64,000 bases of DNA from IMGVR_UViG_3300032562_000003:62001-126000; one strand, 5' to 3'; shown: positions 667-16,513, counted from the first letter of the stretch. Notes: generated from the sequence alone by a model not told the origin. Numbers and translations: made by a program.

Positions 667-2000
667 AATTCAAATAAATCTAGGCCCGATAGTTCTTTCT
701 TAGGTTCGAACATCGGGTCTTTTGTTAAGTATGTATCGTTATCCGTATAGATAACTCTGAACTTATGCTTATTGGTTAGAACAGACTTTATGTCATCGAT
801 GCAGATTATCTTTCTACCTAAATCTTTTATAAAATCAGCATACTTTACAGTGGTTTCATTGCATATCTTAGCAGTGCTATTGTTTGACTTCTTTTCAACA
901 AAGTTATTGATACAGTTACTCCAGCTGTGAAATACCGTTGATTCCATAGCTATAGCATTGGATAGTGATCCTACTTGATACCAATCATTTGCAGTAGGGT
1001 ACTTTTCATAAGCAACTATGATGTCATTAGCCATCGTTTTCTTATTGGTTTCAAAAAAGAATTTCTTGTTAAAGTTATTAGTCCATCGCTGATTTTCAAG
1101 CACAAATGTAGGTAATTGTATGTGCTGTTCATAAAAAGCCATGCCATAGCTTTCTACGGTGCTAGGATTAAATGCTATCCTAGACCCTGAAATGAAATCT
1201 ACTTTTTCTTGTCCTATGATCCCTACCTTAATTTCGTATTTGGCATTGATAGTTTTCAGACGATCTTCAAACTTCTTAGCGCCGGTGGCACTGGTCATGA
1301 TACGGGCCGGCAGTTTAACCTGATTTATCAATTCTATAAAAAGTTCGGGCTGTTTTCCGTCTTCCCATCTACCTACAAATAAAATACCCTCGCGAGGTCC
1401 GCTGTATTTTTCGAGCAATCCTTTTTCTGATATAGGAATAGGTAGATACTCTGCGTTAGAGAATGTCGATTGATTAAACCTACTTTGTGTTCCAATAGTA
1501 AGGCTATTCAACTGTAACTGCTCACGCATCATTTCATTGACACTGTCCAAAAAAGGATTTTTAGTATCTTTAAAAATCTGTGATTCTAGGTGAGTGTAAG
1601 CGATATTTTGAATACAATCAGATAATCCTAATGCGGCGGCAACTTGTATAGTTTCATAGGTGTTGCATACAAATGCGTCATAGATGTTAGTTGTTAATGC
1701 TTTAACGATTGCATCTCTAAAGTTAGCCATGCGTTCATAACAATAGCTATCTTCATACATAAAAATTGCACTGTGATCAGTGTATTGAAGCGGAACCTTA
1801 GGATAAATTACATTAACCTTAAGCTCTTTAACAAAATCTTCTGCAAGACCCTGTGGAACTTTATCTGTAATGATATCAACTTTTATGCCATGACTACTCA
1901 TCATTTCACAGAAACTCTTTGCGAATTGTCCAATTCCACCATGCGGAATTAGGGTCTGTGAACTAACCAAAAAGCCAATTCTGTGAGTATATAAGTTCAT
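663..2000 (-). CDS. GT-B (GT4-like) glycosyltransferase with C-terminal extension
   Basis: HGGIGQF N-terminal loop, ILFVGRWEDGKQPE, and PSTVESYGMAFYE (ExFG-type motif). Confidence 0.85.
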   Translation of the reverse strand: MNLYTHRIGFLVSSQTLIPHGGIGQFAKSFCEMMSSHGIKVDIITDKVPQGLAEDFVKELKVNVIYPKVPLQYTDHSAIFMYEDSYCYERMANFRDAIVKALTTNIYDAFVCNTYETIQVAAALGLSDCIQNIAYTHLESQIFKDTKNPFLDSVNEMMREQLQLNSLTIGTQSRFNQSTFSNAEYLPIPISEKGLLEKYSGPREGILFVGRWEDGKQPELFIELINQVKLPARIMTSATGAKKFEDRLKTINAKYEIKVGIIGQEKVDFISGSRIAFNPSTVESYGMAFYEQHIQLPTFVLENQRWTNNFNKKFFFETNKKTMANDIIVAYEKYPTANDWYQVGSLSNAIAMESTVFHSWSNCINNFVEKKSNNSTAKICNETTVKYADFIKDLGRKIICIDDIKSVLTNKHKFRVIYTDNDTYLTKDPMFEPKKELSGLDLFEF

Positions 2001-2230
2001 CTAGCAACCAACAATAGATGATAATCTTGAATCGTGTACCAACGATCTATCCTATAGGTAGTTCCTAATTCATTATATGTTAGTCTCTGCGATATTCTAT
2101 ATGCAGTTTTAAACCAAATCCAATCTCCGCTTTGACTGCACTTGTGTGGAAAGAAACAGAACATTAATCGAATTTCATCTGCACCCCTTATCCAAATTTG
2201 GTTAGCCTCTGTGTTGACCATATGCCACAT
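1997..2230 (-). CDS. Small hypothetical protein
   Basis: Fills the gap between queE and the GT and overlaps the GT start by 4 nt. True start uncertain. Confidence 0.6.
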   Translation of the reverse strand: MWHMVNTEANQIWIRGADEIRLMFCFFPHKCSQSGDWIWFKTAYRISQRLTYNELGTTYRIDRWYTIQDYHLLLVAR

Positions 2231-3112
2231 TTACGTTCCCCATTGGTTCTTCCAGAGCGTGACCTGCAATCTATCACTATAACGAAGCCCATGCTTCATT
2301 GCTGCTAGTGCCACGTTCTTGTTATTCAGTTGATACACACTTTCTACGCCACCAACTGGCATCAGATAAACATCACCCGTAAATCCAGCATCACGGTACA
2401 CTTGAGTCGTTTCTAAGGCCTCATCAATGTCATTTTCTGTAGCTACAACAAACTTTAGATACGTGTGTCCAACTTCCTCATAGCTGCATACGATATCGGG
2501 CTGAATCGCCTTCTCGCGTGCTTCGCCCGAGCAGCTTAGTTTGGCACTGACAGAAAACGTAATCTCACGATCCTTGTCATCTGAACCAAATCCTAACTTT
2601 CCACCTTCATACACCCAATCCTCTAGATAGTGTCTAAGTTCATGAGTAAGCGGCTGGGTGCCATTTGTCTCAAAGGTGATTTCTCGCAGACCCTTCATTT
2701 TGGGATGACTCAACAAAGACGGATATGATCGTTGCCACGTAAGCAATGGTTCTCCGCCAGTAATAACAAGATGCTCTCGCCTCCATTCATTGAACGGTAG
2801 TATTACCATAATGTCATCAACTATTTCATTGACCGTCTTGAATGGAGACAAGTCCTTGAAGCGAGGATCCCAGCTAGCATAACTGTCACACCCGGTGCTG
2901 ACTAATGGTAGAGATTCATAATTTTCATAAGGAGTATTCTTATGAGCGAAGGCGATAGCATCAACCTCGTCACTTAACTCACCTTTGGGCATTCCGAAAC
3001 CAGCACATTTGAAGTTACAGCCAAACGTGCGTAAAAATACCGACGGGACGCCTTGATATCTTCCCTCGCCTTGAATTGAGTAGAATAACTCACTGATCTT
3101 TATTTTTGTCAT
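2231..3112 (-). CDS. queE: 7-carboxy-7-deazaguanine synthase QueE (radical SAM)
   Basis: ISELFYSIQGEG, FLRTFGCNFKC...GCDS, VITGGEPLL, FETNGT, and C-terminal RYSDRLQV. Confidence 0.93.
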   Translation of the reverse strand: MTKIKISELFYSIQGEGRYQGVPSVFLRTFGCNFKCAGFGMPKGELSDEVDAIAFAHKNTPYENYESLPLVSTGCDSYASWDPRFKDLSPFKTVNEIVDDIMVILPFNEWRREHLVITGGEPLLTWQRSYPSLLSHPKMKGLREITFETNGTQPLTHELRHYLEDWVYEGGKLGFGSDDKDREITFSVSAKLSCSGEAREKAIQPDIVCSYEEVGHTYLKFVVATENDIDEALETTQVYRDAGFTGDVYLMPVGGVESVYQLNNKNVALAAMKHGLRYSDRLQVTLWKNQWGT

Positions 3113-3548
3113 TTTCTTCTTTCAAGTTATCATTTTCGGACTTATGCTGATTACTCGACAAGTATCGTATTAGTTCTTTGTCCGTTGGTTGAACCGCATA
3201 GTTATTTTTGAAAAATATTTCATAACTGTCGCTGCCGTATTTACCAATACCATAGAGCATTGTAGCATCATCATGATCCCAATTCAAATAATCTCGGGTC
3301 ATTCCAAGCAATCTTTTTACCCGAACATTAGTCATGCCTAAAGGAGAGACTACACGTTTGATATCGTCTTCGATAGCTAACAGCAACTTCTCAGGTGTAT
3401 CCCAACTCGTTAAAAACTCAGGTAATACTTTCTTTACTTGCTGCCTGGATGTTTGGTTCAACATGATTACTCCGACCATGTGTTGCCATGGTCCTTTTAT
3501 TTGCTGCTGCACCATCAAGTCGGCTCGCATTCTGTTAGATTTATCCAT
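3090..3548 (-). CDS. MBD4-like HhH-GPD DNA glycosylase
   Basis: VGVIMLNQTS and the HhH motif LYGIGKYGSDSY, matching the MBD4 glycosylase signature (LNxT...GIGKYxxDSY). Confidence 0.8.
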   Translation of the reverse strand: MDKSNRMRADLMVQQQIKGPWQHMVGVIMLNQTSRQQVKKVLPEFLTSWDTPEKLLLAIEDDIKRVVSPLGMTNVRVKRLLGMTRDYLNWDHDDATMLYGIGKYGSDSYEIFFKNNYAVQPTDKELIRYLSSNQHKSENDNLKEENDKNKDQ

Positions 3549-3705
3549 GCCAGTGTCTAATTGCGTTTTCGATAATAAAAATGTTGGTAATCACAGACTG
3601 GGTTATTAAGACTGTTCGAATCCAAGCGATCCGATCAGACTCTATATCACAAGGAGAAGCCTTTTCTCCTAAAGCCTTAGCCCATAATCCCCAAAGTTTA
3701 TTCAC
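3541..3705 (-). CDS. 54-aa small phage protein missed by the ORF track (MNKLWGLWAKALGEKASPCDIESDRIAWIRT...)
   Basis: Manual translation. The GTG start overlaps the queD stop, and the stop overlaps the glycosylase ATG, so it is coupled at both ends. Confidence 0.75.
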   Translation of the reverse strand: MNKLWGLWAKALGEKASPCDIESDRIAWIRTVLITQSVITNIFIIENAIRHWHG

Positions 3706-4211
3706 GCAAAAAGGTCCTCATTCCATTCACGGTGCCCTTCTCTGAATGCCATATTGCTTTGAGTCTCGCGCACTTCGACGCGATAGCACCACAGCCGGGC
3801 CGCCTCGGAAGGCCCCCACATTTCAGGAATATAAACTCCATTGACATACTTATAAAGCATGTCGGCTAAGCTTTCGCATCCCAATTTCGGGAGTATAGTT
3901 AACTTCATAAGACCACGCTTTTCTGCTTCTTTATACCAGTCAAGTTCCGGGTCATCAGAACTAACTAATGTGGTATGGTCAAATTGGTCTTCAAGTACCT
4001 TCTTTAGCTCCTTAAGACCGCCATAATCGGCGGCCCAATTACGAACGTCTAGCTCGTTAGTTCCAAAATAGAACTTCATAGAAAAGCTATATCCGTGAAT
4101 CAAATTGCAATGAGAATCTGCTCTCCATTGCCGATAAGCACAAGGAAACGCATCGTGGTATTCCTTTGTACTAGTATATGCATATGATACTGGTTGTAAT
4201 GTCATTTTCAT
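3702..4211 (-). CDS. queD: 6-carboxytetrahydropterin synthase QueD
   Basis: HCNLIHGYS, DQFDHTTLV, GCESLA and VEVRET motifs. Confidence 0.9.
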   Translation of the reverse strand: MKMTLQPVSYAYTSTKEYHDAFPCAYRQWRADSHCNLIHGYSFSMKFYFGTNELDVRNWAADYGGLKELKKVLEDQFDHTTLVSSDDPELDWYKEAEKRGLMKLTILPKLGCESLADMLYKYVNGVYIPEMWGPSEAARLWCYRVEVRETQSNMAFREGHREWNEDLFA

Positions 4212-4217
4212 TCTTTC

Positions 4218-4430
4218 TTACGTAAATCGTTCAACGGTTATGATACCGTAACGATACATTTTTGCTTCACAGCCAATTCTTTCTATGACTGCTTCTGCTA
4301 GCTTAATCATTTTTACACTGTTACCACACAGTATGGTAAGCGGAAACTCCTTCTGATTTAACAGAATGAAGTTTTCCACCATAACATCAACGTCTTGATG
4401 TCGTACACCATGTAAATCTAGATTTAGCAT
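4218..4430 (-). CDS. Small Smr-like domain protein
   Basis: N-terminal LDLHGV and the later ILCGNS resemble the Smr DLHG...ITG-G pattern. Confidence 0.55.
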   Translation of the reverse strand: MLNLDLHGVRHQDVDVMVENFILLNQKEFPLTILCGNSVKMIKLAEAVIERIGCEAKMYRYGIITVERFT

Positions 4431-5104
4431 TTTCCCATTCTTGCAATGCTTAGGAATTCATTTCTAGCAGCAGGGTCAGTCTTGAATCCACCACCTAAAC
4501 GAACAGTTACCGTTGAAGATCCGGTATCCTCAACACCACGCGATTTCACGCAATAGTGCTGTGCATCAATCATAACTGCAACATCCTCAGTATCTAGAAT
4601 AAATTGCAGAGTATGAAATACCTGTTCAGTCAGTCTCTCTTGAATTTGAGGACGCTTACTGAAGTATTCGACAATGCGATTGATCTTAGACAACCCAAGA
4701 ACCTTATCCTTAGGTACATATGCGACCGTCGCAACTCCATCGATGACCACAAAATGATGCTCACAGTTAGATTGAACGTTCACGTTTCGTTCTACTACCA
4801 TTTCGTTATATTTCATCTTATTCTCTACAGTCGTACACTTCGGGAATGCATCATAATCCAAACCCCAAAATATTTCGTTGCAGTACATTTTAGCAACCCG
4901 CTTTGGCGTTTCAGCCAAGCTGTCGTCTGTTAGATCAAGTCCTAACGTTTTCATAATATGTTCGAAATCTCGTTCGATGATTTCAATCTTGTCTTTACGG
5001 TCTAATCCGTTATCTTTAAACGGAGTTTCTACTCCGACTTTAACAAGATGTTCATGGACGCTACGACCCAGATCGGGGTCCGTTTTGGTTTTGTTGTATG
5101 ACAT
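4424..5104 (-). CDS. folE: GTP cyclohydrolase I
   Basis: ETPKRVAKMY, SNCEHH, GLSKINRIVEYFSKRPQIQERLT and HYCVKSRGV. Confidence 0.97.
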   Translation of the reverse strand: MSYNKTKTDPDLGRSVHEHLVKVGVETPFKDNGLDRKDKIEIIERDFEHIMKTLGLDLTDDSLAETPKRVAKMYCNEIFWGLDYDAFPKCTTVENKMKYNEMVVERNVNVQSNCEHHFVVIDGVATVAYVPKDKVLGLSKINRIVEYFSKRPQIQERLTEQVFHTLQFILDTEDVAVMIDAQHYCVKSRGVEDTGSSTVTVRLGGGFKTDPAARNEFLSIARMGKC

Positions 5105-5169
5105 AGTAAATCCTTCCTTACGCGGATGTCAATTTTGAGTGCGTCACCGTTGTGTGACACATGTATTTA
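5105..5169 (-). promoter_or_regulatory. folE leader: TAAATA promoter, two hairpins and SD
   Basis: Minus strand reads TAAATAC-at-GTGTCAC-acaacg-GTGACGC...ATCC-gcgtaaggaa-GGAT-ttact-ATG. Confidence 0.45.
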
Positions 5170-6342
5170 GTACTTTGATTCTCTTGTATATTTTCTATAA
5201 TCCGTACGATCACGATTCCACTTCTCCCCGTTTCCTTCAAGGATATCGCAAATACGATCCACAGTTTTATCGGTCCAATCACTGATCTTGCCCATATTTG
5301 CGTGTGGACGACGCAGCAAAGGATCTAGCTTGTTGATCGCATCTTGAATAGACCACGGAATGTACAAACGCTCAGGATCATTAGCAAAAGTTTCAGGAAA
5401 CGAACGATATGCGGGATACAGCACATTGCAACCCAATGCATCAGCCTCGCTTACAGTGTTGGATACCCAATCTTGTAATGCACAGTTGAAGACTACTCGG
5501 CTATCGTTAACAATCTCATAGTATTGATTCTTTTCCAAATCTTCATATAGCGTTAATTTTCGATCTTCGATCATCTTGCGAGTGCGTTGCATGTAGCTGT
5601 CATTGTTGCTTTTCAGCTTGCTGCCGCTACAAATAACGAATTCTACATTTTTGCTCGGATGTTGCTTGTGCCATTCATCGATCAAATCGAGATAGAAGTC
5701 AGGTTGCTTCTCCTGATCCCAGCGTGCAGAGAAAACAACTCGCATACGACGGTCATTGAACGGCTTGATACGTTCAACTCGACTTTGCACCTCATCCTTA
5801 CCAAAAGCAAGACCGGAAATATTATAGATGGGAGCAGTCCAACCAGCAATGGCCATGTGCGCAACCATTTCTTCATTGGTTGCAAGAACACCGTCGACAA
5901 ATTCGTTAACCATCTTCTCGTAATGCCCCATCCAGCGTTCCATTCCCCATACGTGAACAAAATCATCAGGGTCAATCGTTTGTGCTAGACAGCGAACATA
6001 TACTTTGGGTCTCATGTCATATGGAATCTGATCCATGATATACGGAAGAGACTCAATTCCCGGCTGAAACATATCTTCAAAGTAGATAACATCTTCTTGT
6101 GTGATCTTACCTTCCTTCATCAGCTTTACCAAATTCATCATCTGGCTCATACCGAAATAAGAACGACCATGTGCGTCTAGCACTTGACCAGTTACGATAG
6201 CCTTGCTGCTATCGAGCGTTTCGCCCGGCACCACTATGTAGTCGATGCCCCTACGATCAAAGACTCTAGTATTCCAGTATGTCAATTGGAGAGTGTACCG
6301 AGCCTTATAAGGCTCCAATCCCATATAGTATAGTTTACGCAT
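5167..6342 (-). CDS. GT-B glycosyltransferase (second)
   Basis: VVFSARWDQEKQPDF and NCALQDWVSNTVSEADALG. Confidence 0.82.
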   Translation of the reverse strand: MRKLYYMGLEPYKARYTLQLTYWNTRVFDRRGIDYIVVPGETLDSSKAIVTGQVLDAHGRSYFGMSQMMNLVKLMKEGKITQEDVIYFEDMFQPGIESLPYIMDQIPYDMRPKVYVRCLAQTIDPDDFVHVWGMERWMGHYEKMVNEFVDGVLATNEEMVAHMAIAGWTAPIYNISGLAFGKDEVQSRVERIKPFNDRRMRVVFSARWDQEKQPDFYLDLIDEWHKQHPSKNVEFVICSGSKLKSNNDSYMQRTRKMIEDRKLTLYEDLEKNQYYEIVNDSRVVFNCALQDWVSNTVSEADALGCNVLYPAYRSFPETFANDPERLYIPWSIQDAINKLDPLLRRPHANMGKISDWTDKTVDRICDILEGNGEKWNRDRTDYRKYTRESKY

Positions 6343-6402: not shown

Positions 6403-6636
6403 TTATCGACGGGTATTAAGAAGTTCACGTTCCTTAAACTTCTCTGCATCGATTTCCCATTGATTCTTTGCAGGTTTGCTTGCAACTGTCTTTTGGTACT
6501 GCCGATAGATATAGCTCTTGTTGTTATATAAATCTCGCTCATCATATCGATAACCGTAGTCTCTACAGAAAATACGGTAGTTCTCCAAATCTTCAAAGAT
6601 TTGATTGACGATAGACTTATTGTCGAGCTTTGCCAT
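6403..6636 (-). CDS. Hypothetical protein, 77 aa (MAKLDNKSIVNQ...)
   Basis: SD TAAGGA lies before the ATG at 6636. The longer start at 6735 in the track is unlikely. Confidence 0.7.
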   Translation of the reverse strand: MAKLDNKSIVNQIFEDLENYRIFCRDYGYRYDERDLYNNKSYIYRQYQKTVASKPAKNQWEIDAEKFKERELLNTRR

Positions 6637-6646
6637 TTTTAGTTCC

Positions 6647-6742
6647 TTAGATGGTGAGTTGTTGAGATTGAGTAGTATTATAGAAAATCGTGGCACCGTT
6701 TTCACCGTCTTCTGAAACGGTAATTTCAATATCACGATTTGG
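6647..6742 (-). pseudogene. Orphan duplicate of the dpdL C-terminus
   Basis: Translates PNRDIEITVSEDGENGATIFYNTTQSQQLTI*, versus the dpdL end PNRYIQISVSEDGENGAELTFTTA*. Confidence 0.85.
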
Positions 6743-6817
6743 GTTAAAAATTTTATCTCATACTGGTCTCCTTTAAAGGTTTAGGCATAAATACAATGAT
6801 GAAAGAAAGATTGAACT

Positions 6818-7585
6818 ATGCCTAAACTTCAAGAGCAACATAATTATACTTGCGTATACTGCGGGAATCAAGCAAAATGGATAAGTGTAAATTCTAAGGT
6901 TTTCCGTTGTGTAGAAAAAATTACTCAATGTCCGGGCTTCATCGCAAAGGCAGAATCTTCTAGGAAAAAAAACATTACTCCTGAGGAAAGGAGAGTCCAC
7001 ATGAAGAAGATGAGTGAGGTTGGGAATAAGAAACTTCAGCAACTGCATACTGATCCTAACTGGGTAGAAGAAAAGGGTAAGAAAATTTCTGATGCTTTGC
7101 AGCAACGAGGTGGACATACCGGTGAACGCAATCCGATGTTCAATAAAAAACATACCTCTCATACTAAACAGATGCAATCATCGCGGGCATCAAACAGATC
7201 ACCTGAGTCATATCAAAAAGCTACACTGACAAAAATAGAACGTGGAATTTCTATACCGAAAGAACTCAAGACAGAATGGGAATTATATAGAGAGCAAGTC
7301 ACTAATTTCACTAATACTAGCTGGAAGTATGCAGAACATATTATTAATCCGAACAATCTAAAAAGAGGAAATGAATACGAACTAGATCACCGATTTAGCA
7401 TTACAGAGGGATTCAAACAAAGTATTCCACCTGAAATTATAGGCCATGCTGCCAATCTAGAACTGTTATTAAAAAGCGATAATAGATCAAAACGGACAAA
7501 ATGTTCCATCACTAAAGAAGAACTTTATGCTGTGGTAAAAGTTAGTTCTGCTCCATTTTCTCCGTCTTCACTCACTGATATTTGA
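6818..7585 (+). mobile_element. Free-standing HNH homing endonuclease (antisense)
   Basis: ELDHRFS...GHAANLELLLKSDNRSK, a NUMOD3-like NPMFNKKHT segment, an N-terminal CxxC, and its own TAAATA at 6788-6793. Confidence 0.85.
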
Positions 7586-8239: not shown

Positions 8240-9790
8240 CTATTCTAAAACTTCTAACATAGCGTCATCGCTATCTTCAACAACTTCTTCGATTTCAGGA
8301 TCAGGTTCTTCTATAGTAAAACACTCCTCAAACTTTGAAAGAGCATTTGTAGCCCTTTTTCCGGAAAACCCTTGTCCGGCCTTCATCTGCTGCCAGAATA
8401 GATTATATTGATCAATCATTGCAAGGCTTTTCTCACGATCCTTTAGAGAAAAAATCTTATCAATAAGATCACCGAATGTGGTACCATCAAACTTGTCCAA
8501 AACCATTTTAGGATTAATACCCGAGTCTGATTTACGATTGGCTTCTTGTACCGCATAAATGTGCCGATATACGTTATGTGCTTGCATCAATGTATAACTA
8601 AGAGTGTCCCAGCTGGTCTTCGTTTCTTTGCCGTGTTGCCCCAGAAAGCCTGGTCCTCTGTAACAGAGATCCTTAACCATCATTATATCAGTTACAGGGC
8701 TATCACTAAACACTTTATGGATGCCGTCTTCCAAAACCGCATCTTTGAACTTGCGAGTATCAGTCGCATAATTTTTGTTTTCAGCAGTTTTTTCCATCGA
8801 ATACGTCCACTTCGTGTTATGTCTAAACGTATTGTTGTTATACGCAAGCCCCTTTGCGGCCGCGTAGAATGGAGACGCACAATCAAACGTGATTTGCAAA
8901 TTTGGATTGTGATACTTGCGTATTGCTCTTTGAATATCGGTGAACAAAATAGCGTATTCTAGAATAGAAGTACCCAAACAGTGAATAAGATCATGTTTGC
9001 CTGGCTCAAGCAGACCATCATGAATGATGTTAACCATACGCTTTAGCATCAGATGCACGTCGATCTTTGTTTGACCACCAAACGCCCATCCGTTGAAATG
9101 ATTGTCTGGGTAAATATTAGGATCGCAATACTTCTTCATTTCTTCATACCAATCATCAGACTGTTTATGATTACGTCCTTGTAGAACGTTTAGAAACTTA
9201 CAACGGCCATCACGATTAGCAATGAAATACTCATTGTTAATATGAGTAGCAGCAATAGCGTCCTCAATGGTTCGAATGCCGTGCACGGACTTACCCGTTT
9301 TGGGGTCTTTGATATGATATGTAGTAAGCGACTGTGAAGGAATGTCGAGACACATACCGTAGTCCATGTACTCGTCCATCCACTTCAAAACCTCAGTGCG
9401 TTTCTTCATGGCCTTCGGGCAGTTAGGATCTTTCCAGTCAGCGGGCCATTGACACTTTAGAATTTGGAATCCACCAGAATCACCTAACATGAATGTATTT
9501 TTACGATCACGCTTACGAATGATGCTCTCATTGTGATCATTCTTCGTAATGTCTAGATTAGCGTGACCAGCTGAATACAGGCCCCACTTGTAAGTGTACA
9601 GTCCTTCTTTTTCGTTCAGAAAATTTAGCTTTTCAACATTACCGTTTAATCCAACAGGTATTCTAGCCGAATCAAAATAGTTTTCACCCTCACGTTGTTT
9701 ACCTAAACCAGCAATAAAAAATGACGATACTGCCGGCAGGAACAAAGCCCAGTCTGACTGGTGTGCGTTTGATAAGTTAATTTGTTCCAA
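8240..9790 (-). CDS. dpdA: DNA-guanine transglycosylase, DpdA2-like (TGT family)
   Basis: TGT motifs MLGDSGGFQI, CLDIP, LNVLQG, WAFGG, HCLGTS and TFDCASP, next to folE/queD/queE. Confidence 0.88.
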   Translation of the reverse strand: MEQINLSNAHQSDWALFLPAVSSFFIAGLGKQREGENYFDSARIPVGLNGNVEKLNFLNEKEGLYTYKWGLYSAGHANLDITKNDHNESIIRKRDRKNTFMLGDSGGFQILKCQWPADWKDPNCPKAMKKRTEVLKWMDEYMDYGMCLDIPSQSLTTYHIKDPKTGKSVHGIRTIEDAIAATHINNEYFIANRDGRCKFLNVLQGRNHKQSDDWYEEMKKYCDPNIYPDNHFNGWAFGGQTKIDVHLMLKRMVNIIHDGLLEPGKHDLIHCLGTSILEYAILFTDIQRAIRKYHNPNLQITFDCASPFYAAAKGLAYNNNTFRHNTKWTYSMEKTAENKNYATDTRKFKDAVLEDGIHKVFSDSPVTDIMMVKDLCYRGPGFLGQHGKETKTSWDTLSYTLMQAHNVYRHIYAVQEANRKSDSGINPKMVLDKFDGTTFGDLIDKIFSLKDREKSLAMIDQYNLFWQQMKAGQGFSGKRATNALSKFEECFTIEEPDPEIEEVVEDSDDAMLEVLE

Positions 9791-10145: not shown

Positions 10146-10877
10146 TTACTTTCCCTGACAAGGAATCATATAGCGATATACTGCCAGACCACTATCAACG
10201 ACAATCTCTGCAACGCCCTGATCAGACATTCTGATGGTCTTGTCACCGTCTAAGTCTAATACGGACAAGAACACCTTTACCGGCAAATTCCAAACTTTTG
10301 TTAGCTTTCCGGTAATGTTAGTTTGGAACACAAAGTTACCAGAGTGAGACGACTTGTCACCAAAGAAAAACTTGAGTTCGTTGTTTTCGACCTTCGTTGA
10401 GAAGTTTACTTCTTCACTGTTAGCCTGTGCTTGCTTCTTAAGACGTTGAATGCCGGCGTTTGTAGGCTCAAACGTGATATCCCAAGTTGCTCCGTTGAAC
10501 TTAACTGGAGCAACAGTAGCTTCTATGACAGACTTAGCCATCAGTCGGTAGTCATTAACAAAGTCACCATTACTAGTTTCAAAGTGAATTGATGCAGGAT
10601 GATCTTGTCCATCGTATGTTTCGCGTACAAGGTTTATAGTTGAAGTGTCATCATAATCCTCGAATCCTAAAATAGTCTTTAGCTTAGACAAGTTAGGCAT
10701 ACCAAACGTGCCTTTGAATTCTGGGATCGGATTCTTGAAATCACCAAACAGAATAAGCGATCTGTCAGTCGCCAATCCTGCAATTTTTGTTTCTGTGTCT
10801 GTACCCACAACCTTTATAAGCTCGACTACACCGAGTCCTTGCGTGTGTTGGATCAGATCAACTAAGTAATCTTTCAT
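10146..10877 (-). CDS. Probable sliding clamp (gp45-like)
   Basis: 243 aa, directly downstream of polB, with a clamp loader elsewhere in the window. Assigned from size, context and family recall. Confidence 0.55.
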   Translation of the reverse strand: MKDYLVDLIQHTQGLGVVELIKVVGTDTETKIAGLATDRSLILFGDFKNPIPEFKGTFGMPNLSKLKTILGFEDYDDTSTINLVRETYDGQDHPASIHFETSNGDFVNDYRLMAKSVIEATVAPVKFNGATWDITFEPTNAGIQRLKKQAQANSEEVNFSTKVENNELKFFFGDKSSHSGNFVFQTNITGKLTKVWNLPVKVFLSVLDLDGDKTIRMSDQGVAEIVVDSGLAVYRYMIPCQGK

Positions 10878-10915
10878 GTGTTTTCCTTTAATGTATTTAG
10901 GTCTTTATTTTGTTT

Positions 10916-10944
10916 ATAATAGTGGAATTCTTTACGAAAGTCAA
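10916..10944 (-). promoter_or_regulatory. Sigma70-type promoter
   Basis: TTGACT-N17-TATTAT; a TAAATA follows at 10894-10899. Confidence 0.7.
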
Positions 10945-10952
10945 CTATACTG

Positions 10953-12197
10953 TTAGCCGAAAGTAAACAACGAACTAAATGTACTATTAGTATTGGTGTC
11001 ATATCTGATTTTCCAATCTAACACACCTAACAGGTTGTCTATCTTTTCATCCACTAGTTTACGTTCCATATCAAGATCATCGAATGGTAGTTCTAGGAAC
11101 CATTTTGGAAGTCGTAATTCATCGGTGGGATATGCGATTGAAGTAATACCTAAGGGATTTGATTTTAGTGTACACACCACAACCTTCATGCCGTCGACAA
11201 TTTTTTGGCTGTACTGGTCGCTATTCATCTTACGCAGTTGATTGTAGTGAATGGCGGCCTTAGCATGACCAACACTGCACTTACCGGTTCTCTCATACTT
11301 AATGGTATGATTTGTCAAATTATTAACTGATTTAGGTGAACCCTTAGTCCAACTGTCTTGTTCTGAAAGCTTTCTTTTAAACTCTTTGATCTTTTCGATC
11401 ACTTCGTCTCGGCCCTTACCCTCTTGAATTACCATACAAAGAATTTCCATAAGAAATTCCTGAACGTACTTAGGTGTATCTGCACGCTTTAGGTCTAGAC
11501 CCATAGCTTTGATTTCACCTAATTTACCTTCCTTATCCTTGCGTTTACCTTCTTTGTCGAAGATGTTGATTGCGTAACGCTTCTTTGTAATAAAGATAGA
11601 ACGATCACCGATCAATTCTCTACCAGCTTTGATGACCTCACCGTTCTTGCGGGGACAATGGAACGCTTTCTCCATGAAAGCAGGAAAGCTAGCGTTAGTT
11701 TGCTCTGCGATGTTGTCGTACAGTTCGATGCAAACTTCCTTGTTCCATTCTATTTCACCTTGTTCGATTCTATCTTTTAATATAGAATATGCAGTGAAGT
11801 AGCAGGAGTCAGTATCACCGTAGATGATCGCCTCACCTTCGTGAGTGTATTCACCTGCAATGATTTCATTGATCTGGCTCATCATGTGCCTAACAATTTG
11901 ACGACCAGACAAAGTAACTGACTGTCCGATCCGCTTATCATAAAACCTGCAATATTCGTTCAAAATGGATCCATATGTAGAGTTCAAGAGAATTTTTTTT
12001 ACTAACTGTCGTTTGTCCCAATACTCCATTGCTAACCCCCAAACTGATTTATATGCTTCCATTGGATGAATGGAGCGGTCTCGTATTTCTAATCCGAAAC
12101 CAGTTATGTATTCAACAAGACCAATTTTGTCTTTGTTTTGAATAAAATCATTCACTTTATTAGTATCGTATTCCAATATAATTTTCGTTAGATTCAT
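10953..12197 (-). CDS. polB: DNA polymerase B, C-terminal subunit (motifs B and C)
   Basis: EYWDKRQLVKKILLNSTYGS, IIYGDTDSCY, KKRYA and KAMGLDLKRADTP. Confidence 0.93.
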   Translation of the reverse strand: MNLTKIILEYDTNKVNDFIQNKDKIGLVEYITGFGLEIRDRSIHPMEAYKSVWGLAMEYWDKRQLVKKILLNSTYGSILNEYCRFYDKRIGQSVTLSGRQIVRHMMSQINEIIAGEYTHEGEAIIYGDTDSCYFTAYSILKDRIEQGEIEWNKEVCIELYDNIAEQTNASFPAFMEKAFHCPRKNGEVIKAGRELIGDRSIFITKKRYAINIFDKEGKRKDKEGKLGEIKAMGLDLKRADTPKYVQEFLMEILCMVIQEGKGRDEVIEKIKEFKRKLSEQDSWTKGSPKSVNNLTNHTIKYERTGKCSVGHAKAAIHYNQLRKMNSDQYSQKIVDGMKVVVCTLKSNPLGITSIAYPTDELRLPKWFLELPFDDLDMERKLVDEKIDNLLGVLDWKIRYDTNTNSTFSSLFTFG

Positions 12198-12251
12198 ATT
12201 TTTGCTCTATAAGATAAATACATATGGTGCTTTTTTAAAGGAGAGTCGTAT

Positions 12252-13151
12252 ATGGTGGATTGTGCTATTTGTAACAAAGAAATGAAACGAGTGACTAGTA
12301 GTCATTTAAAAACTCACAATATAACTACGGCTGAATACTTAGCGCAATTTCCAGGATCTGTTTTATTTTCTGATGAGCTAAGGCATGCATACGGAAAACA
12401 CGCGAGAGATAACAACCCAATGCATGATCCAGTTAGTGTAGAAAAAGTAAGAAACGCATTAACTGGTAAACGAAAAACAGAGGAACATAAACAAAAATTA
12501 TCAACCGCACGAACCGGAGTATCTTGGGGAACCCACACACCTGAACATAAAGAATACATGAAGGTTGTCAGCAAGATTAATATGGAAGAGAGAATAGCCA
12601 ATGGATGGAAACAGAAACCGTGGACTGCGGAGAGAAGAGCCAAACAGTCTACTAAAATGATAGGAAATACCATTGGGTTAGGCGGCTCCGGAAATAAGGG
12701 TAAAAAGCTTGATCTATCAGATAACCAACGACGCAATAGGAGTAAAAAACGAGTAGAATTCATGTCTAAGAACGATACTCCTAAAAAACATACTTCTATT
12801 GAATTGTCGTTTATTGAATTTTGCAAGAATAATGATATATTGTACATTCATCAGCATCCTATACATACTGAAAAGGGTAGTTGGTTATTTGATTTCTTAT
12901 TACCAAATCTAAATTTACTAGTAGAAGTTGATGGTGAATATTGGCACACATCTAAAAGACAAATAAATCGAGATTTAATAAAAAATAACGTGGCATTGGC
13001 AAGCGGACATACAATATTGCGCTTATCAGACACTAACCTTGATTTCTCCTTTATCTTCGGCAGCAAGGATGCAATCATTTCGCATACTAATGGCATAATG
13101 GAAAGTAGGATTCAATCGGTAAAAAAATCATCAGGTAAAGATTTACCATAG
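12252..13151 (+). mobile_element. Antisense homing-type endonuclease (Vsr/DUF559-like PD-(D/E)XK, with zinc finger and NUMOD3-like repeats)
   Basis: CAIC...HLKTH, FDFLLPNLNLLVEVDGEYWH and RDLIKN. SD AAGGAG and TAAATA (12215-12220) lie upstream. Confidence 0.85.
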
Positions 13152-14791
13152 AGTATTTCTCTAACTGCGTATTGTTTTTTCTGAAGTTTTTTACGTTCAG
13201 TATACCACCGAGAAAGTAGTCCTGGAATCACTCCTTCTTTTTCGTAAGTAAAGATGGTACCATTTGCTGAAAGGATCCATGGTCTGTTACTGTCGAAGAT
13301 CATCTTCCAAATTTCAGCAGCAGACATTTGTACACTTCTACCATCTTCATAGTCTATCCAAAGGGTAGTTCCGCGTTCTTGATTCATGATTGCTGTATAC
13401 TCAATTGAGCCAAACAATCCTTCCCACAGAATTGCACCAATGACGCCTTCTTCCTCGCTGTCATCTCCGAACTTTTTCTTCTTCTTGTTCTTCTTTTCAG
13501 AAGCCAATCTCATGCTCTTTTCGTGCATGTATTGGTCAGTCAGTGTTTGACGAACTTGACCTATGATGGTTTCCGGAGACATGTTCAGCGCTCGAATGTC
13601 AGACGGATACAGAGAGTTGATGTCAACTGCACCAGGATATTCGTGCATTCCTTGTTTAGGAATAGCAACAAACGCACCAGCTGCCGGAAACCCAGTATCT
13701 TCTTTGGGCTTCTTGTTAGGTACGATCATTCCACGTGCGTGAGCTTCATTGAAGATAGCCATTTCGATCATCTGCACCGAACCCATAACTGTCGGAAGAA
13801 GTACGCTATTCTCGTGTGCTAGTGCGTTAGCAAGATCAAGGAACTTTAGCTTATTGTGAATTTTAACCATAAGCATCGTGTCTTGTCTGTTATACTCCAC
13901 GAACGTTTTAAAGTCCTGATTGTATAACTGATCCAAACTGCCTTCGTACTGAGTTTTACGTTCACCTACTTCCATCTCACCGATAGCATCAAGAGAATAA
14001 CTATGACGAGACTCGTAGTTGTACTTCTTATACAGTTGAAGGTAGTCCATATGAATTCTACCAACTAGATCGTATGTTTCTTCTTCCTTGCCGAAACGTT
14101 CATAGGTACGAGTCTTAGGGAGTTTCCCCAGCAGACAAAACTTACGAGTATCGTTTTTAGACATGATTCTAGTAACGCGATTAACCGTATACGGAATGTC
14201 GTATCCCTCTGAGTTCCAGCCAGTTAGAATGTCAGCATCTTCGATCAACTCAAAGAAGGTTTCAAACATCTCTATTTCAGAACGAAACAGAAAGCAGTTT
14301 GGAAAATCTTTAGTTAACTCTTGCGCAGTTTCATCTGTCATGTGCTTAGGTGGCATGACCAACGTAATCAGTTGATCAAGCCAATCTAGATACATTGAGA
14401 TTGCAGTTACTGGATTGAACGGATCACTAGTAGGACTAAATCCTCGCTCAGGATCAAAGTCCACTTCAATGTCGAAAAAGCAAGTATGAAGCTTTGGTGG
14501 TTCAGCATTAAGGTAGTTATCAGCCAAACACCTAAATACTACGTTAACGTCGCTCTCAAATAGTTTTTTGTTACTATGTATTCTGCGTTCCTTCTCGAAT
14601 TCGCTACGTTTACGAGTAGAGAACCGAGACAGCGGATCACCGTAAATAGAACGATACTTTCCTTTAGGATCAGCATAGTACATTACGTAGTTCGTAGGGA
14701 ACTCTTTGTATGCACGTTTACCTTCAGGAGTACGTTCTACAACGTGGATTCGATCTGCGTTGGAATCTAATACTGCATCGACATATGCCAT
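13112..14791 (-). CDS. polB: DNA polymerase B, N-terminal subunit (3'-5' exonuclease and motif A)
   Basis: FFDIEVD, TGWNSEGYDIPY, YNRQDT, AVDINSLYPS and GLLSRWYTERKK. Confidence 0.95.
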   Translation of the reverse strand: MAYVDAVLDSNADRIHVVERTPEGKRAYKEFPTNYVMYYADPKGKYRSIYGDPLSRFSTRKRSEFEKERRIHSNKKLFESDVNVVFRCLADNYLNAEPPKLHTCFFDIEVDFDPERGFSPTSDPFNPVTAISMYLDWLDQLITLVMPPKHMTDETAQELTKDFPNCFLFRSEIEMFETFFELIEDADILTGWNSEGYDIPYTVNRVTRIMSKNDTRKFCLLGKLPKTRTYERFGKEEETYDLVGRIHMDYLQLYKKYNYESRHSYSLDAIGEMEVGERKTQYEGSLDQLYNQDFKTFVEYNRQDTMLMVKIHNKLKFLDLANALAHENSVLLPTVMGSVQMIEMAIFNEAHARGMIVPNKKPKEDTGFPAAGAFVAIPKQGMHEYPGAVDINSLYPSDIRALNMSPETIIGQVRQTLTDQYMHEKSMRLASEKKNKKKKKFGDDSEEEGVIGAILWEGLFGSIEYTAIMNQERGTTLWIDYEDGRSVQMSAAEIWKMIFDSNRPWILSANGTIFTYEKEGVIPGLLSRWYTERKKLQKKQYAVREILYGKSLPDDFFTD

Positions 14792-15048
14792 TAATTAGCT
14801 CGACCAACAGTCTCCAAAATGGTATTGAGTTCCTCATTTTCCTCGTTAGTTTGTGCGAGGCGCTGCTTCTGTGCAACCTTGATAGCCTTCTTAAGAATGG
14901 CTGGCTTTATTTCTAGTTCTTCTGCGATTGCCTTAATGGTGTCGTTTAGACCTTCATTAAGAGTTTCAATTTCTTGTAGGACACCTAAGCCCTCGTTAAC
15001 CAGTTGGGTCAACTTAATCTTTGCGTCAGTGTTGAATACTCTAGACAT
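14791..15048 (-). CDS. T4 DsbA-like small dsDNA-binding protein
   Basis: EIETLNEGLNDTIKAIAEELEIKPAILKKAIK pattern, upstream of polB. Confidence 0.6.
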   Translation of the reverse strand: MSRVFNTDAKIKLTQLVNEGLGVLQEIETLNEGLNDTIKAIAEELEIKPAILKKAIKVAQKQRLAQTNEENEELNTILETVGRAN

Positions 15049-15072
15049 GTATACTCCTTCTATGTCTTGTGA

Positions 15073-15101
15073 AGTATATAGTACTTACAAGTATAGTTCA
15101 A
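15073..15101 (-). promoter_or_regulatory. Sigma70-type promoter
   Basis: TTGAAC-N17-TATACT, followed by SD GAAGGAG and the ATG at 15048. Confidence 0.7.
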
Positions 15102-15126
15102 TTGTTTTGGGAGGATGTACTGTATA

Positions 15127-15504
15127 TTACTTTGCTTTTAGTTTAGCAACCAAAGCTTTAACTTTGTCTGTTGGGTTTTTTATAAGGTCAAATGCACGCA
15201 TGTCTCTTCGAACAGCAGCCAATTGTACTTTTTCGGTGGGGTTTTTTATATTCTGAATATGGTACGTTTCAGAGTTAATAATTTGTGCTTGTTCGGTTGG
15301 GTTTTGTATAAATCGTATTGCGGACGCCGCATCAGTTACCGCCGCAAGTTGTATTTGGGCTGAAGGATTTGTGATATCCCTTATAAGGAATCCATTTTTA
15401 GAAACTGTTTCAAATTGTACTTTTTCGGTAGGATTTTTTATATATATAAATGCACGTATGTCTCTTCGGACCGCAGCCAGTTGAACCTCTTCTGGTGGAT
15501 TATC
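15127..15504 (-). pseudogene. Frameshifted continuation of the KNP-x4-QLAAV repeats of the upstream ORF
   Basis: The alternate frame reads DNPPEEVQLAAVRRDIRAFIYIKNPTEKVQ...KLKAK* and has no start of its own at the junction. Confidence 0.8.
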
Positions 15505-16513
15505 TATATATGTAGCGTTTCATAGACATCGGATTAGTTTTAACCGCGGCCATCATAACCGCATTACTTGGATTTTTTATATAACGAATAAGGTATCCAT
15601 CAGACTCAACTGCAACTAGTTGCATTTGTTCAGTTGGGTTTTCTATGTATTGAATTATCTCAGGATCGGATGTTATTGCTGCTAATTTAACTGCATTACT
15701 TGGATTTTTTATATATTCTAGAGCTAGCAATGCCGAATCCGTAACTGCTGCTATTTTTTGTTTCTCAGTTGGGTTTTTTATGTATTTTAACATCTCAGCT
15801 GGACGATTGATAAACGCATCATTCCATATCTTTTTAGAAAAATAATGCGAGACTGATCTTACTTGTTCTATACCGAGTTCATTATCAGCCTCATCCATAA
15901 ACTGGGCAGTTTCAAAATGAAACTGCCACTTGTTCGGAAATTTCTTGAATAGAATTATATATATCTTGCCTTTTGTATTATAATGATTGAAATAATTTTC
16001 ACCCTTTGTGGCTGCTGTACACCACCGCGTGCCTCTACCATAATAACATGCTGCTGCCTCATCTTCTGGTATGATTATTCTTACATTATCATCTTCAAAA
16101 TAAAGAGTAGATTTTCCTTTGTTGACCTCCTTCGGATCAGTATTCAATTGTGAATACTTTGACATCATGGTATCTTCAAATTCTTTATATGTTTTAAATT
16201 TGTTGATGTCAGCGTCTTCTGGTTGAATTTGTCTTCTCTTCTTGCCTATATTATATGAACTTAAAACATCCATTCTGTTTAGGTCTTCGAACGGTACTCC
16301 GCCTTTGGCATACATACGAGCCAACCACTGAGTATATTCTTTATTTGGAGTTGGATCCTTAGTCTCTATCTTTTCTAAAATATCAGATGGTGTTATTCCG
16401 GACCTATAGGTCCTATAGGTGTTATCTTCGTACGCAACATGAATGAGCTTATCACCCAAAGTAGCGGCGGTCTTTGTTCTGTCATATTCAATAAGAAATT
16501 CATTTGCTCGCAT
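15500..16513 (-). CDS. PcfJ-like domain protein with DUF4116-like helical repeats
   Basis: DPTPNKEYTQWL, AACYYGRGTRWCTAA and repeated IKNPxxxxxxAAV. Leader MRANEFLIE. Confidence 0.7.
   Translation of the reverse strand: MRANEFLIEYDRTKTAATLGDKLIHVAYEDNTYRTYRSGITPSDILEKIETKDPTPNKEYTQWLARMYAKGGVPFEDLNRMDVLSSYNIGKKRRQIQPEDADINKFKTYKEFEDTMMSKYSQLNTDPKEVNKGKSTLYFEDDNVRIIIPEDEAAACYYGRGTRWCTAATKGENYFNHYNTKGKIYIILFKKFPNKWQFHFETAQFMDEADNELGIEQVRSVSHYFSKKIWNDAFINRPAEMLKYIKNPTEKQKIAAVTDSALLALEYIKNPSNAVKLAAITSDPEIIQYIENPTEQMQLVAVESDGYLIRYIKNPSNAVMMAAVKTNPMSMKRYIYR

Follow-up and report, generated by a model that had tools for sequence, protein, structure and literature searches.

The family B replicative DNA polymerase gene (polB) of a freshwater jumbo phage is divided at the tip of the fingers domain into two cistrons, and a predicted homing endonuclease gene lies between them on the opposite strand. 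The explanation we favour, and consider probable, is that an EDxHD nuclease cassette of about 1.2 kb entered the fingers tip, that the two polymerase halves associate, and that the element moves by intronless homing and escapes its own cleavage through a changed motif B. The locus lies in a window of 64,000 nt (the whole stretch of DNA analysed; Table 1), which belongs to a 259-kb contig of an uncultured freshwater jumbo phage from lake water (CheckV completeness 73%). The phage is related to the Rak2/PA5oct/Atu_ph07 group, and its polB is about 45% identical to theirs.

Table 1. Features of the polB locus, in window coordinates
Feature	Position	Strand	Details or basis
polB-C cistron, 414 aa	10953..12197	-	ORF; Pfam; PHROG 262 and half-length family 1918
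Motif B substitution cluster	11952..11999	-	R67K, A74T, A77S, L78I, H82Y (C-part)
Putative mobile cassette, approximate, ~1.2 kb	11991..13189		polB alignment; derived nucleotides shared with L092
Divergent spacer between polB-C and endonuclease starts, 54 nt	12198..12251		
T4-late-promoter-like box GATAAATAC, 30 nt 5' of endonuclease ATG	12213..12221	+	
Endonuclease Shine-Dalgarno AAAGGAGAG, 6 nt 5' of ATG	12237..12245	+	
Predicted free-standing homing endonuclease gene, 299 aa	12252..13151	+	ORF, family alignment, profile match, PHROG, model
Convergent 3'-end overlap of polB-N and endonuclease, 40 nt	13112..13151		ORFs; L092 has the same layout, 37 nt
polB-N cistron, 559 aa	13112..14791	-	ORF; Pfam; PHROG 262 and half-length family 2062

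The divided polymerase and its antisense neighbour

The arrangement is real and recurs unchanged across independent metagenomes. It is found whole, at 100% protein identity, in four further IMG/VR contigs, and a fifth, truncated by its contig end, has polB-N together with the last part of the nuclease gene. Every sampled word of the 3.7-kb stretch is present in 20 lake or freshwater metagenome runs from many samples. Single contigs span the stretch fully in three of these runs (word depths 21–91), and in a fourth a contig at depth 5.6 spans all but the last 120 nt, each with 0 differences and 0 joints. The genome is a metagenome assembly and 73% complete, yet the identical sequence in these five contigs and 20 runs rules out an assembly artefact, and the strong purifying selection on the coding sequence speaks against a pseudogene; we regard either account as hardly credible. 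The DNA runs bear on the arrangement alone, and none of the RNA runs searched contain this DNA. Neither Megablast with the locus nor tblastn with the nuclease gave a match in 50,697 phage records, and a close relative in culture is not available.

The polB-N product comprises the N-terminal domain, the 3'-5' exonuclease (Exo I FFDIE, aa 105–109; Exo II around N193/D198; Exo III Y300–D304), palm motif A (DINSLYPS, aa 390–397) and the first finger helix (RWYTERKK, aa 528–535), and ends in ...RWYTERKKLQKKQYAVREILYGKSLPDDFFTD, 24 aa past RWYTERKK, where a reading of the sequence alone (hereafter the sequence-only reading) had estimated about 20. The polB-C product begins with a 57-aa head, the remaining part of the fingers tip, before EYWDKRQLVKK. 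The second finger helix with motif B (KILLNSTYG, aa 68–76), motif C (YGDTDS, aa 126–131), KKRY, the thumb and a C-terminal ...SLFTFG tail follow, and an in-frame TAG stands four codons 5' of the ATG. The same reading had described about 55 extra residues at this end; the count was close, but the residues are extra only in comparison with the nearest relatives, being homologous to an insertion in the fingers tip that is present, unbroken, in more distant jumbo-phage polBs.

Pfam matches place DNA_pol_B_exo1 and positions 11–138 of DNA_pol_B in polB-N and the remainder of DNA_pol_B, from position 146 on, in polB-C, so that the family B domains PF03104 and PF00136 are divided between the two ORFs, and each half matches its half-length PHROG family end to end. 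Exo I, II and III and motifs A (DxxSLYPS), B (KxxxNSxYG) and C (YGDTDS) are all present and invariant in the alignments. Alignment, including the translated cistrons of Aeromonas phage 25, places the break between the two long finger helices and thereby upholds the fingers-domain position proposed beforehand, which is the same as that in gp43A/43B of phage 25. This is the sole polB on the contig and no PolA was found there; as the contig is only 73% complete, another polymerase could lie outside it. Both polB halves and the nuclease are under purifying selection, a qualitative conclusion from dN values of 0.07 (polB-N) and 0.10 (polB-C) against the close relative L012 and 0.34 (endonuclease) against L092, as dS is saturated throughout and dN/dS ratios are therefore not computable.

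Sequence comparison and modelling identify the antisense ORF as a putative homing endonuclease, free-standing and of the Vsr-like EDxHD family, in agreement with the sequence-only reading as to both its strand and its Vsr-like character; the 40-nt overlap of polB-N with its stop had likewise been read correctly. Its N-terminus carries a CxxC...H..H zinc-finger-like motif (aa 4–22), followed by NUMOD3-like repeats at aa ~75–135 (e.g. TEEHKQKLSTARTG), a likeness that was judged by eye and aligned across homologs, with no Pfam NUMOD model matching at E ≤ 0.01. The C-terminus forms a Vsr-like/EDxHD nuclease domain (aa ~181–262). Invariant positions of the family alignment include C4, C7, H18, T181, E184, Q201, D214, E225, D227, H232, D241 and K244, and the catalytic residues E225, D227, H232 and D241 (VEVDGEYWH...D) are unchanged in nine homologs at 21–59% identity; the family descriptions in PMC2677866 and PMC3239194 equate the EDxHD residues with Vsr D51/H69/D97. 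The family profile matches the catalytic domain of I-Bth0305I (PDB 3r3p, E = 4.9e-9), and Foldseek with the nuclease model returns 3r3p at probability 1.0 and a TM (target) of 0.61, together with PvuRts1I, AbaSI and Vsr. PHROG matches are to homing endonuclease families, and Pfam gives Vsr-like matches to PvuRts1I_N, DUF559 and MTES_1575 that are weak and all under the gathering score. The pLDDT of the whole-nuclease model is a mediocre 68. The nuclease is predicted to be active.

The endonuclease appears to be equipped with a late-type promoter and a ribosome-binding site of its own. Of all upstream 7-mers in the genome, ATAAATA is the most strongly enriched (47 upstream regions vs 3.4 expected), the box GATAAATAC is an instance of this motif, and a comparable late-type box precedes every polB-associated nuclease homolog. 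Neither a recognisable promoter nor a strong Shine-Dalgarno sequence was found for polB-C, whose transcription would have to cross 900 nt of antisense gene. In a scan for sigma-70 promoters and terminators, shuffled sequence gave more sites than the real one and no useful candidate emerged for polB-C, and hairpins that would sequester the nuclease ribosome-binding site or precede polB-C were no better than shuffles (z = 0.44 and 0.12).

Probable acquisition of the cassette

Some 65 nearest relatives (73–90% identity) have a contiguous polB of 898–917 aa with a short fingers tip, in which the equivalent of N aa 1–539 joins directly to C aa 50 onward. Our allele is sister to L012/L014 within this unbroken clade (SH-aLRT 95 and 96). 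Since the relatives are unbroken and our allele is nested among them, a cassette of ~1.2 kb was probably acquired and brought the break into this lineage with its nuclease; the earlier idea of a split that the endonuclease created or colonised is supported. The cassette would comprise the last part of the first finger helix (KKLQKK), the N-tail, the stop, the antisense endonuclease, the spacer, the C-head and, as far as motif B, the second finger helix. Its core (12051..13174) is missing in all nearest relatives.

The same break is found in other metagenomic phages. In L092 and L094–L104, polB-N and polB-C flank a homologous nuclease gene that lies on one strand or the other, L092 being the other antisense carrier. 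Five of them (L097, L098, L099, L101 and L103) also contain a group I intron (RF00028, 74–92 bits) right after the ...NLNS codon of motif B, and the three-part layout of these intron-bearing relatives is that of Aeromonas phage 25. Together with the ~65 unbroken alleles, the two antisense carriers, the several same-strand carriers, the intron-bearing carriers and the three-piece genes form a natural before-and-after series from which the cassette borders, the likely target and the route to immunity can be read.

An AU test rejects the grouping of our allele with L092 (p = 0.011, for a group chosen after the tree had been inspected). The derived nucleotides that the two share are restricted to the flanks of the insert: they increase from about N codon 521, and make up 10 of 30 in C codons 60–69 and none in codons 70–79. 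These shared nucleotides are more informative on co-conversion than the drop in identity to L012 near the junction (62% vs ~90%), which is mostly the variable tip itself. Break, tip and nuclease are thus common with L092 as one tract, and we infer that they arrived together, a statement about this lineage as distinct from the original donor lineage. Carriers are patchily distributed on the polB tree, with at least four changes of state.

The order of events could also have been the reverse, with the endonuclease settling in a harmless intercistronic gap that already existed. The polB of Atu_ph07 is broken at the same place, with its cistrons only 18 nt apart and enclosing no nuclease, and the review PMC2988022 considers such an order for phage 25 as against 44RR. 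However, Atu_ph07 could equally stem from nuclease loss, a route put forward in PMC2677866, and the nearest 65 relatives have neither the break nor the long tip. Given also the single tract common with L092, we consider a pre-existing break unlikely.

Proposed reassembly, homing and escape

One alternative is a single protein or mRNA made from both ORFs, whether through an intron, ribosomal bypass, trans-splicing or a split intein. Related loci offer precedents, with split-intein-like ends at motif C in PA5oct/MIJ3 (PMC6892783), L092 and L094 and group I introns in motif B of L097–L103. At our locus, on the other hand, Pfam detects no intein or Hint domain in the ORFs, and the ends at the break (polB-N ...DDFFTD, polB-C MNLTK) show no Cys/Ser/Thr +1 context and no His-Asn, as the sequence-only reading had stated; the homology of tail and head is to the polB tip of unbroken relatives and not to inteins. 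No Rfam family is found on either strand between 10500 and 15500 at E ≤ 1, and hence there is no intron here. The coding sequence runs continuously through motif B, with no intron of the phage 25 type, and the 914 nt between the halves are occupied by the antisense protein gene. Joining into one protein or mRNA is thereby very improbable. Two narrower candidates, an intron-encoded nuclease and a fractured gene of the split-intein type, were rejected, the former on the empty Rfam result and the latter on the absence of intein blocks and the alignment of tail and head.

Association of separate chains is instead predicted. Modelling of the two halves as a complex, a check suggested with the sequence-only reading, gave an ipSAE of 0.84 in three runs (best control 0.01), a score that may stem from single-chain polB folds remembered by the model; 58 of 80 solved complexes attain the ipSAE mark applied, as do 2 of 110 mismatched pairs. 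The 559-aa and 414-aa products would then associate non-covalently as one polymerase, as in the biochemistry of Aeromonas gp43A/gp43B, with one chain giving the dNTP-contacting Arg/Lys helix and the other giving motif B.

In the mechanism that we propose, the nuclease would be made late in infection and, in mixed infections, would cut endonuclease-free polB alleles, most likely in or beside the motif B coding sequence, ~200–250 nt from the nuclease gene. Repair would copy the cassette and, by co-conversion, the fingers tip that flanks it (intronless homing), and the carrier allele would escape cutting by its changed motif B, related carriers by the group I intron at that place. The patchy distribution on the polB tree and the shared flanking tracts give indirect support to the predicted cleavage and homing. 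Its site near motif B is suggested purely by analogy with phage 25 seg43 and with I-Bth0305I, which cuts adjacent to its own intron site (PMC3239194).

The motif B region had struck the sequence-only reading as divergent, and indeed five of the ten private substitutions at conserved sites lie within 16 residues (scan P = 7e-4). The cluster straddles the group I intron position of the related endonuclease-bearing alleles, and it is a candidate target or immunity region of the endonuclease that fits target immunity or co-conversion. Hitch-hiking donor sequence is as possible an explanation as cleavage resistance, and the cluster could represent donor polymorphism or structural compensation. In L092 the motif B protein sequence equals the consensus and only the codon changes CGT to AGA and AAG to AAA are shared; amino-acid changes are thus not a general requirement for immunity.

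This consensus motif B in L092 would also suit an endonuclease that is decaying or domesticated and no longer homes, with the split merely persisting and the motif B changes due to drift or compensation, as would the mediocre whole-nuclease model and the sub-gathering Pfam matches. We find such a passenger quite improbable. The nuclease ORF is intact in every copy, the catalytic E/D/H/D and zinc-finger Cys/His residues are invariant across the nine homologs, and dN against L092 is 0.34 with dS saturated. Moreover, the promoter box and Shine-Dalgarno sequence are retained in all homologs, the at least four state changes fit ongoing mobility, and the substitution cluster is unlikely to have arisen by chance.

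Beyond acquisition and homing as proposed above, we tentatively entertain, while leaning against it, that the element is a self-contained gene-breaking module that combines a nuclease, a replacement fingers tip, an antisense timing switch and a motif B target with intron or recoding protection. The replacement piece may be a long fingers-tip mini-domain, pre-divided into N-tail and C-head, that joins the halves. If so, the module would enter short-tip polymerases without killing them and fill the role of a split intein without splicing; its antisense late promoter, set against polB transcription, would act as a built-in timing switch, and the motif B coding sequence would be what the EDxHD nuclease recognises, with protection via a group I intron or recoding.

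Comparison with known split polymerases and fractured genes

Naturally split T4-like gp43 had been named in the sequence-only reading, and the literature supports it: gene 43 is divided in the Aeromonas salmonicida phages 25 and 44RR (Petrov, Ratnayaka, Karam 2006, summarised in PMC2988022 and PMC2677866), and the subunits of phage 25 co-purify and are active (PMC2988022). In phage 25, as in our phage, the family B replicative polymerase is interrupted in the fingers tip. In the former, 43A ends 27 aa past the conserved QRK and 43B starts 46 aa before KILINS, and the corresponding distances here are 24 aa past ERK and 67 aa before KILLNS. Phage 25 has a group I intron in motif B, as do our relatives L097–L103, whereas our allele has none. 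The nuclease of phage 25 is seg-like (GIY-YIG) and lies on the same strand, whereas ours is EDxHD/Vsr-like and antisense and overlaps the polB-N 3' end. Phages 25 and 44RR are T4-like Straboviridae and ours is a freshwater jumbo phage; unlike in the former, the gain of cassette and foreign fingers tip can be read here from ~65 unbroken relatives.

With respect to the nuclease, I-Bth0305I (PMC3239194) matches ours in nuclease fold and composite catalytic motif, and the EDxHD endonucleases of PMC3239194 and PMC2677866 share with ours the order of an N-terminal DNA-binding region and a C-terminal nuclease. I-Bth0305I, however, is intron-encoded in recA and has NUMOD2/HTH modules, whereas ours has a zinc-finger-like motif and NUMOD3-like repeats. 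The fractured-gene nucleases of Dassa et al. 2009 (PMC2677866) are free-standing between the gene halves and have their own control elements, as here, and the broken gene is likewise a DNA-metabolism gene in two halves. Most fractured genes use split inteins and ours does not; one intein-less case (SbcD-like) has extra residues flanking the break, as at our locus. Neither a B-family polymerase host nor an antisense orientation occurs in the passages of the two papers considered here.

The other precedent named from the sequence, the splitting of Aeromonas phage Aeh1 nrdA by mobE, is also documented (PMC2988022): a free-standing endonuclease splits an essential gene whose enzyme still functions. 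T4 SegF/SegG show intronless homing with flanking co-conversion and a cleavage site away from the endonuclease gene (PMC2988022). Compared with ours, mobE and SegF/SegG belong to other nuclease families (HNH, GIY-YIG), sit with other host genes and lie on the same strand. Within the same wider clade, the jumbo phages MIJ3 and PA5oct have polB as two genes with a homing endonuclease in between (PMC6892783). Their break is at motif C (YGDTDS) and carries split-intein blocks, and the protein is thus presumably religated, whereas ours is in the fingers tip and has no intein.

Our locus would extend the EDxHD family to a B-family polymerase target, and suggests that two unrelated nuclease families, GIY-YIG in phage 25 and EDxHD at our locus, have arrived by convergence at one polymerase site and one kind of partnership with an intron. 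Split replicative polymerases gauge how much fragmentation an essential enzyme tolerates and how selfish nucleases reshape core phage genes. Practical value is modest: the locus offers a PolB scaffold that is split by nature, and a candidate site-specific nuclease whose target is conserved. The kind of arrangement is known from T4-like Aeromonas phages; the nuclease family, its orientation and the traceable gain of the cassette are what differ here.

Two polymerase halves around an antisense gene

The window belongs to a single IMG/VR virus contig of 258,859 bp (40.6% GC), which CheckV estimates to be 73% complete; on this 73% of a genome, the broken polB is the only family-B polymerase and PolA is absent. 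The three open reading frames, their strands and the 40-nt overlap agree exactly with the description in the sequence-only reading, whose observation is thereby confirmed and whose interpretation is supported by the analyses below. In Pfam searches, polB-N matches the exonuclease domain plus the first third of DNA_pol_B, polB-C matches the remaining DNA_pol_B, and the plus-strand ORF gives weak Vsr-like matches. polB-C begins at the first ATG to follow an in-frame TAG, which lies four codons upstream. Rfam detected no RNA family in 10500..15500.

Features of the polB locus and of sequences discussed with it (window positions unless a record position is given)
Feature	Position	Strand	Remark
polB-N	13112..14791	-	559-aa ORF
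polB-C	10953..12197	-	414-aa ORF
Nuclease ORF	12252..13151	+	299 aa; final 40 nt overlap final 40 nt of polB-N
GATAAATAC late-promoter-like box	12213-12221	+	30 nt before nuclease ATG
Shine-Dalgarno AAAGGAGAG of nuclease gene	between GATAAATAC box and nuclease ATG	+	
ATAAATA(C), examples	6787, 12214, 34479, 39169, 44671		
Insertion relative to short-tip relatives	~12051..13174		
Candidate mobile unit	~11991..13189		first finger helix end to second finger helix as far as motif B
516-aa ORF	8240-9790	-	beside clamp-like gene
243-aa ORF	10146-10877	-	downstream of polB
337-aa ORF	15500-16513	-	
Weak match to nuclease NUMOD-like region	G000:C1:142134-142250	-	outside window

The whole arrangement recurs in four other IMG/VR contigs at 100% protein identity, and a fifth, truncated by its own end, still includes polB-N together with the last part of the nuclease gene. 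Every word sampled from the 3.7-kb stretch is present in 20 lake-water or freshwater metagenome runs. Contigs from three of these runs cover the entire stretch, and one from a fourth run covers all but its last 120 nt, in each case with no differences and no joints. Identical contigs and independent runs spanning the stretch thus exclude an assembly artefact. None of the RNA runs searched contains the sequence.

In the two halves, every exonuclease and polymerase motif is preserved, dN relative to the comparison locus L012 is 0.07 for polB-N and 0.10 for polB-C (dS saturated), and each protein matches a half-length PHROG polymerase family along its entire length. Structure prediction of the two halves together, the check proposed for a heterodimeric enzyme, has them associate through about 400 predicted contacts that include the N-tail and the C-head. 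The ipSAE was 0.84 in three runs, against 0.01 for the best control; of 80 solved complexes, 58 attain this mark, as do 2 of 110 mismatched pairs, and the tool's memory of single-chain folds can give such a pass.

The cultured phages most closely related to this one, with about 45% identity, belong to the jumbo phages: Sinorhizobium Phosso, Pseudomonas PA5oct/MIJ3 and Agrobacterium Atu_ph07, together with Vibrio 2.275.O, XaC1, GAP32 and Rak2-like phages. They share the gene order small DsbA-like gene, polB, clamp-like gene, and in most of them polB is one gene, whose product of about 1000 aa has a long insertion at the fingers tip. The N-tail (...YGKSLPDDFFTD) and the C-head (MNLTKIILEYDTNKVNDFIQNKD...) align with this insertion and are therefore polymerase rather than intein sequence; Pfam likewise finds no intein domain at the locus, in keeping with the initial view that no intein is involved. 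In Atu_ph07 (L003, 5001-7970), polB is broken at the same fingers-tip point, but only 18 nt separate the cistrons and, unlike here, no nuclease lies in the break. Its annotation contains two 'DNA polymerase' CDS; the Atu_ph07 paper counts gp276 and gp277 as two polymerases, and the word 'split' does not occur in it. In PA5oct/MIJ3 the break lies elsewhere, at motif C, where a published split intein is found with a nuclease gene between the halves.

Among the neighbouring genes, the 243-aa ORF occupies the place of the sliding-clamp-like gene of relatives (annotated as clamp in Phosso) and matches phrog_12062 alone, a family of unknown function. The 516-aa ORF has no Pfam or PHROG match and contains GDSGGFQ, which we take to be reminiscent of tRNA-guanine transglycosylase/DpdA-type enzymes. 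In the 337-aa ORF, DUF4116-like repeats (IKNPS/IENPT...) lie at the C-terminus, and the matches are to several PHROGs with no known function.

An EDxHD-family nuclease

Aligning nine homologs, 21-59% identical to the antisense nuclease, reveals a shared N-terminal CxxC...H zinc-finger-like motif, NUMOD3-like repeats and a C-terminal block T..E...Q...DF...L.VEVDGEYWH...D..K...R. The family profile matches the catalytic domain of I-Bth0305I (3r3p) with E=4.9e-9. The AlphaFold model has a pLDDT of 75-93 over residues 181-290, a confident nuclease domain (68 for the whole protein), and Foldseek matches it to PvuRts1I, I-Bth0305I (probability 1.0), AbaSI, Bax1 and Vsr. The Vsr-like character proposed from sequence is upheld by these matches, PHROGs classes the protein as a homing endonuclease, and by profile and predicted fold we assign the antisense ORF to the EDxHD family. 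This family was defined by Dassa et al. (PMC2677866) and Taylor et al. (PMC3239194); its characterised member is a homodimer with a pseudopalindromic cut site adjoining its intron insertion point.

Compared with its counterpart in L092, another antisense carrier, the nuclease has a dN of 0.34 with saturated dS and is therefore a protein under constraint. Around 45 further IMG/VR loci (L105-L151) encode proteins sharing the C-terminal EDxHD nuclease domain alone; none of them adjoins polB, and the family therefore occupies other sites too. Elsewhere in the same genome, a 240-aa ORF contains the weak match listed in the table (44% over 39 aa, E=9e-5) and may be another homing endonuclease.

Recurrence and probable acquisition of the cassette

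The same break in polB harbours homologous nucleases in further phages from metagenomes, with a polB-N that shares 49-78% identity with the one studied here. The nuclease is antisense in L092, L097 and L100 and same-strand in L094-L096, L098, L099 and L101-L104. In five of these loci (L097, L098, L099, L101 and L103), motif B is additionally interrupted, immediately past its ...NLNS codon, by a group I intron (RF00028, 74-92 bits) that lacks an ORF and lies beside the free-standing nuclease. In L092 (reverse strand, 1216-4526), the nuclease shares 59% identity with the one described here, and its gene overlaps the polB-N 3' end by 37 nt. L094, L095 and L092 also have split-intein-like sequence at motif C, so that their polB is in three pieces; in L092, polB-C enters this sequence and the contig then ends. 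In L094 (3214-8558; also L095), the fingers-tip break holds a same-strand EDxHD nuclease at 5001-5894. At motif C of L094, split-intein-like sequence closes the middle piece and intein-C-like sequence opens the last one, with a 318-aa ORF (6607-7563; phrog_22677, CxxC start) between the two pieces.

The nearest relatives are about 75 IMG/VR loci with 73-90% identity, in each of which residues 1-539 of polB-N adjoin polB-C from residue 40-58 onward, depending on the locus. About 65 of them, those read from the first residue, form one continuous ORF of 898-917 aa with the short tip RWYTERKTIQKQAREAYGTDMYDYYDKRQLVRKILLNS.... In a maximum-likelihood tree of the polB N-part (62 rows), this allele is sister to L012/L014 (SH-aLRT 95) within a 49-row clade (SH-aLRT 100) whose other members are short-tip except L092, its basal branch. 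Forcing this allele and L092 together, a grouping picked with the tree already in view, lowers the log-likelihood by 54.9 units (AU p=0.011). The tree requires at least four changes in nuclease presence and at least three in tip length.

Relative to the endonuclease-free consensus, derived nucleotides common to this allele and L092 cluster beside the insert: they increase from about N codon 521, and reach 10/30 in C codons 60-69 and 0 in codons 70-79. This flanking pattern points to a moved unit of about 1.2 kb comprising, in order, the closing part of the first finger helix, the tail with its stop codon, the nuclease gene in antisense, a spacer, the head with its start codon, and the second finger helix as far as motif B.

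The suspected divergence of motif B is borne out. At 475 sites with at least 97% conservation in 49 distinct short-tip relatives, this allele differs at ten, five of which (R67K, A74T, A77S, L78I and H82Y) fall inside 16 residues of polB-C (scan statistic P=7e-4). These five changes lie on either side of the point at which related carriers have their intron, just past the right-hand limit of the tract that this allele has in common with L092. Target-site immunity would fit this pattern, with motif B as the presumed nuclease target; a co-converted donor polymorphism fits equally well. L092 keeps the consensus protein at motif B, and the two alleles have codon changes alone in common there (CGT->AGA or AAA, AAG->AAA); an amino-acid change is therefore not the sole possible route to immunity.

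Expression signals and comparison with known systems

ATAAATA is the most enriched 7-mer upstream of this genome's genes (47 upstream regions vs 3.4 expected), with GATAAAT and TAAATAC as extensions. Across the whole genome, ATAAATA(C) is enriched 14-fold within 80 nt upstream of genes, and 52 of its 91 copies lie at most 100 nt upstream of a same-strand called gene. The motif resembles the T4 late promoter, TATAAATA, and is probably a promoter of this type; the jumbo phages of this group have a gene for a T4-type late sigma factor. The box and Shine-Dalgarno preceding the nuclease gene, which have comparable counterparts at every polB-associated homolog, point to a cassette with its own, probably late, expression signals. 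For polB-C, no recognisable promoter or good Shine-Dalgarno was found, the latter being present in about 41% of this genome's genes. Its transcription would most simply occur by read-through from polB-N across the antisense gene, in which case the polB mRNA would be antisense to the nuclease mRNA.

The intron-bearing relatives share their three-part layout with Aeromonas phage 25, in which 43A ends and 43B begins in the tip, the nuclease is same-strand, and a group I intron lies just past KILINSLYGAL. The phage 25 nuclease is seg-like and unrelated to the one described here. In 2006 work by Petrov and colleagues, this nuclease reportedly cut intron-free alleles at the intron site. The two phage 25 polymerase subunits co-purify and are active (PMC2988022).

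The kind of system described here is thus already known from the HEG-split gp43 of Aeromonas phages and from gene-fracturing EDxHD nucleases. It differs from these in pairing an EDxHD nuclease with a B-family polymerase and in the antisense, overlapping orientation of the nuclease gene. As judged from the sequence comparisons, it also differs in a cassette that appears to bring its own fingers tip, and in a comparative series that documents the probable gain of that cassette.
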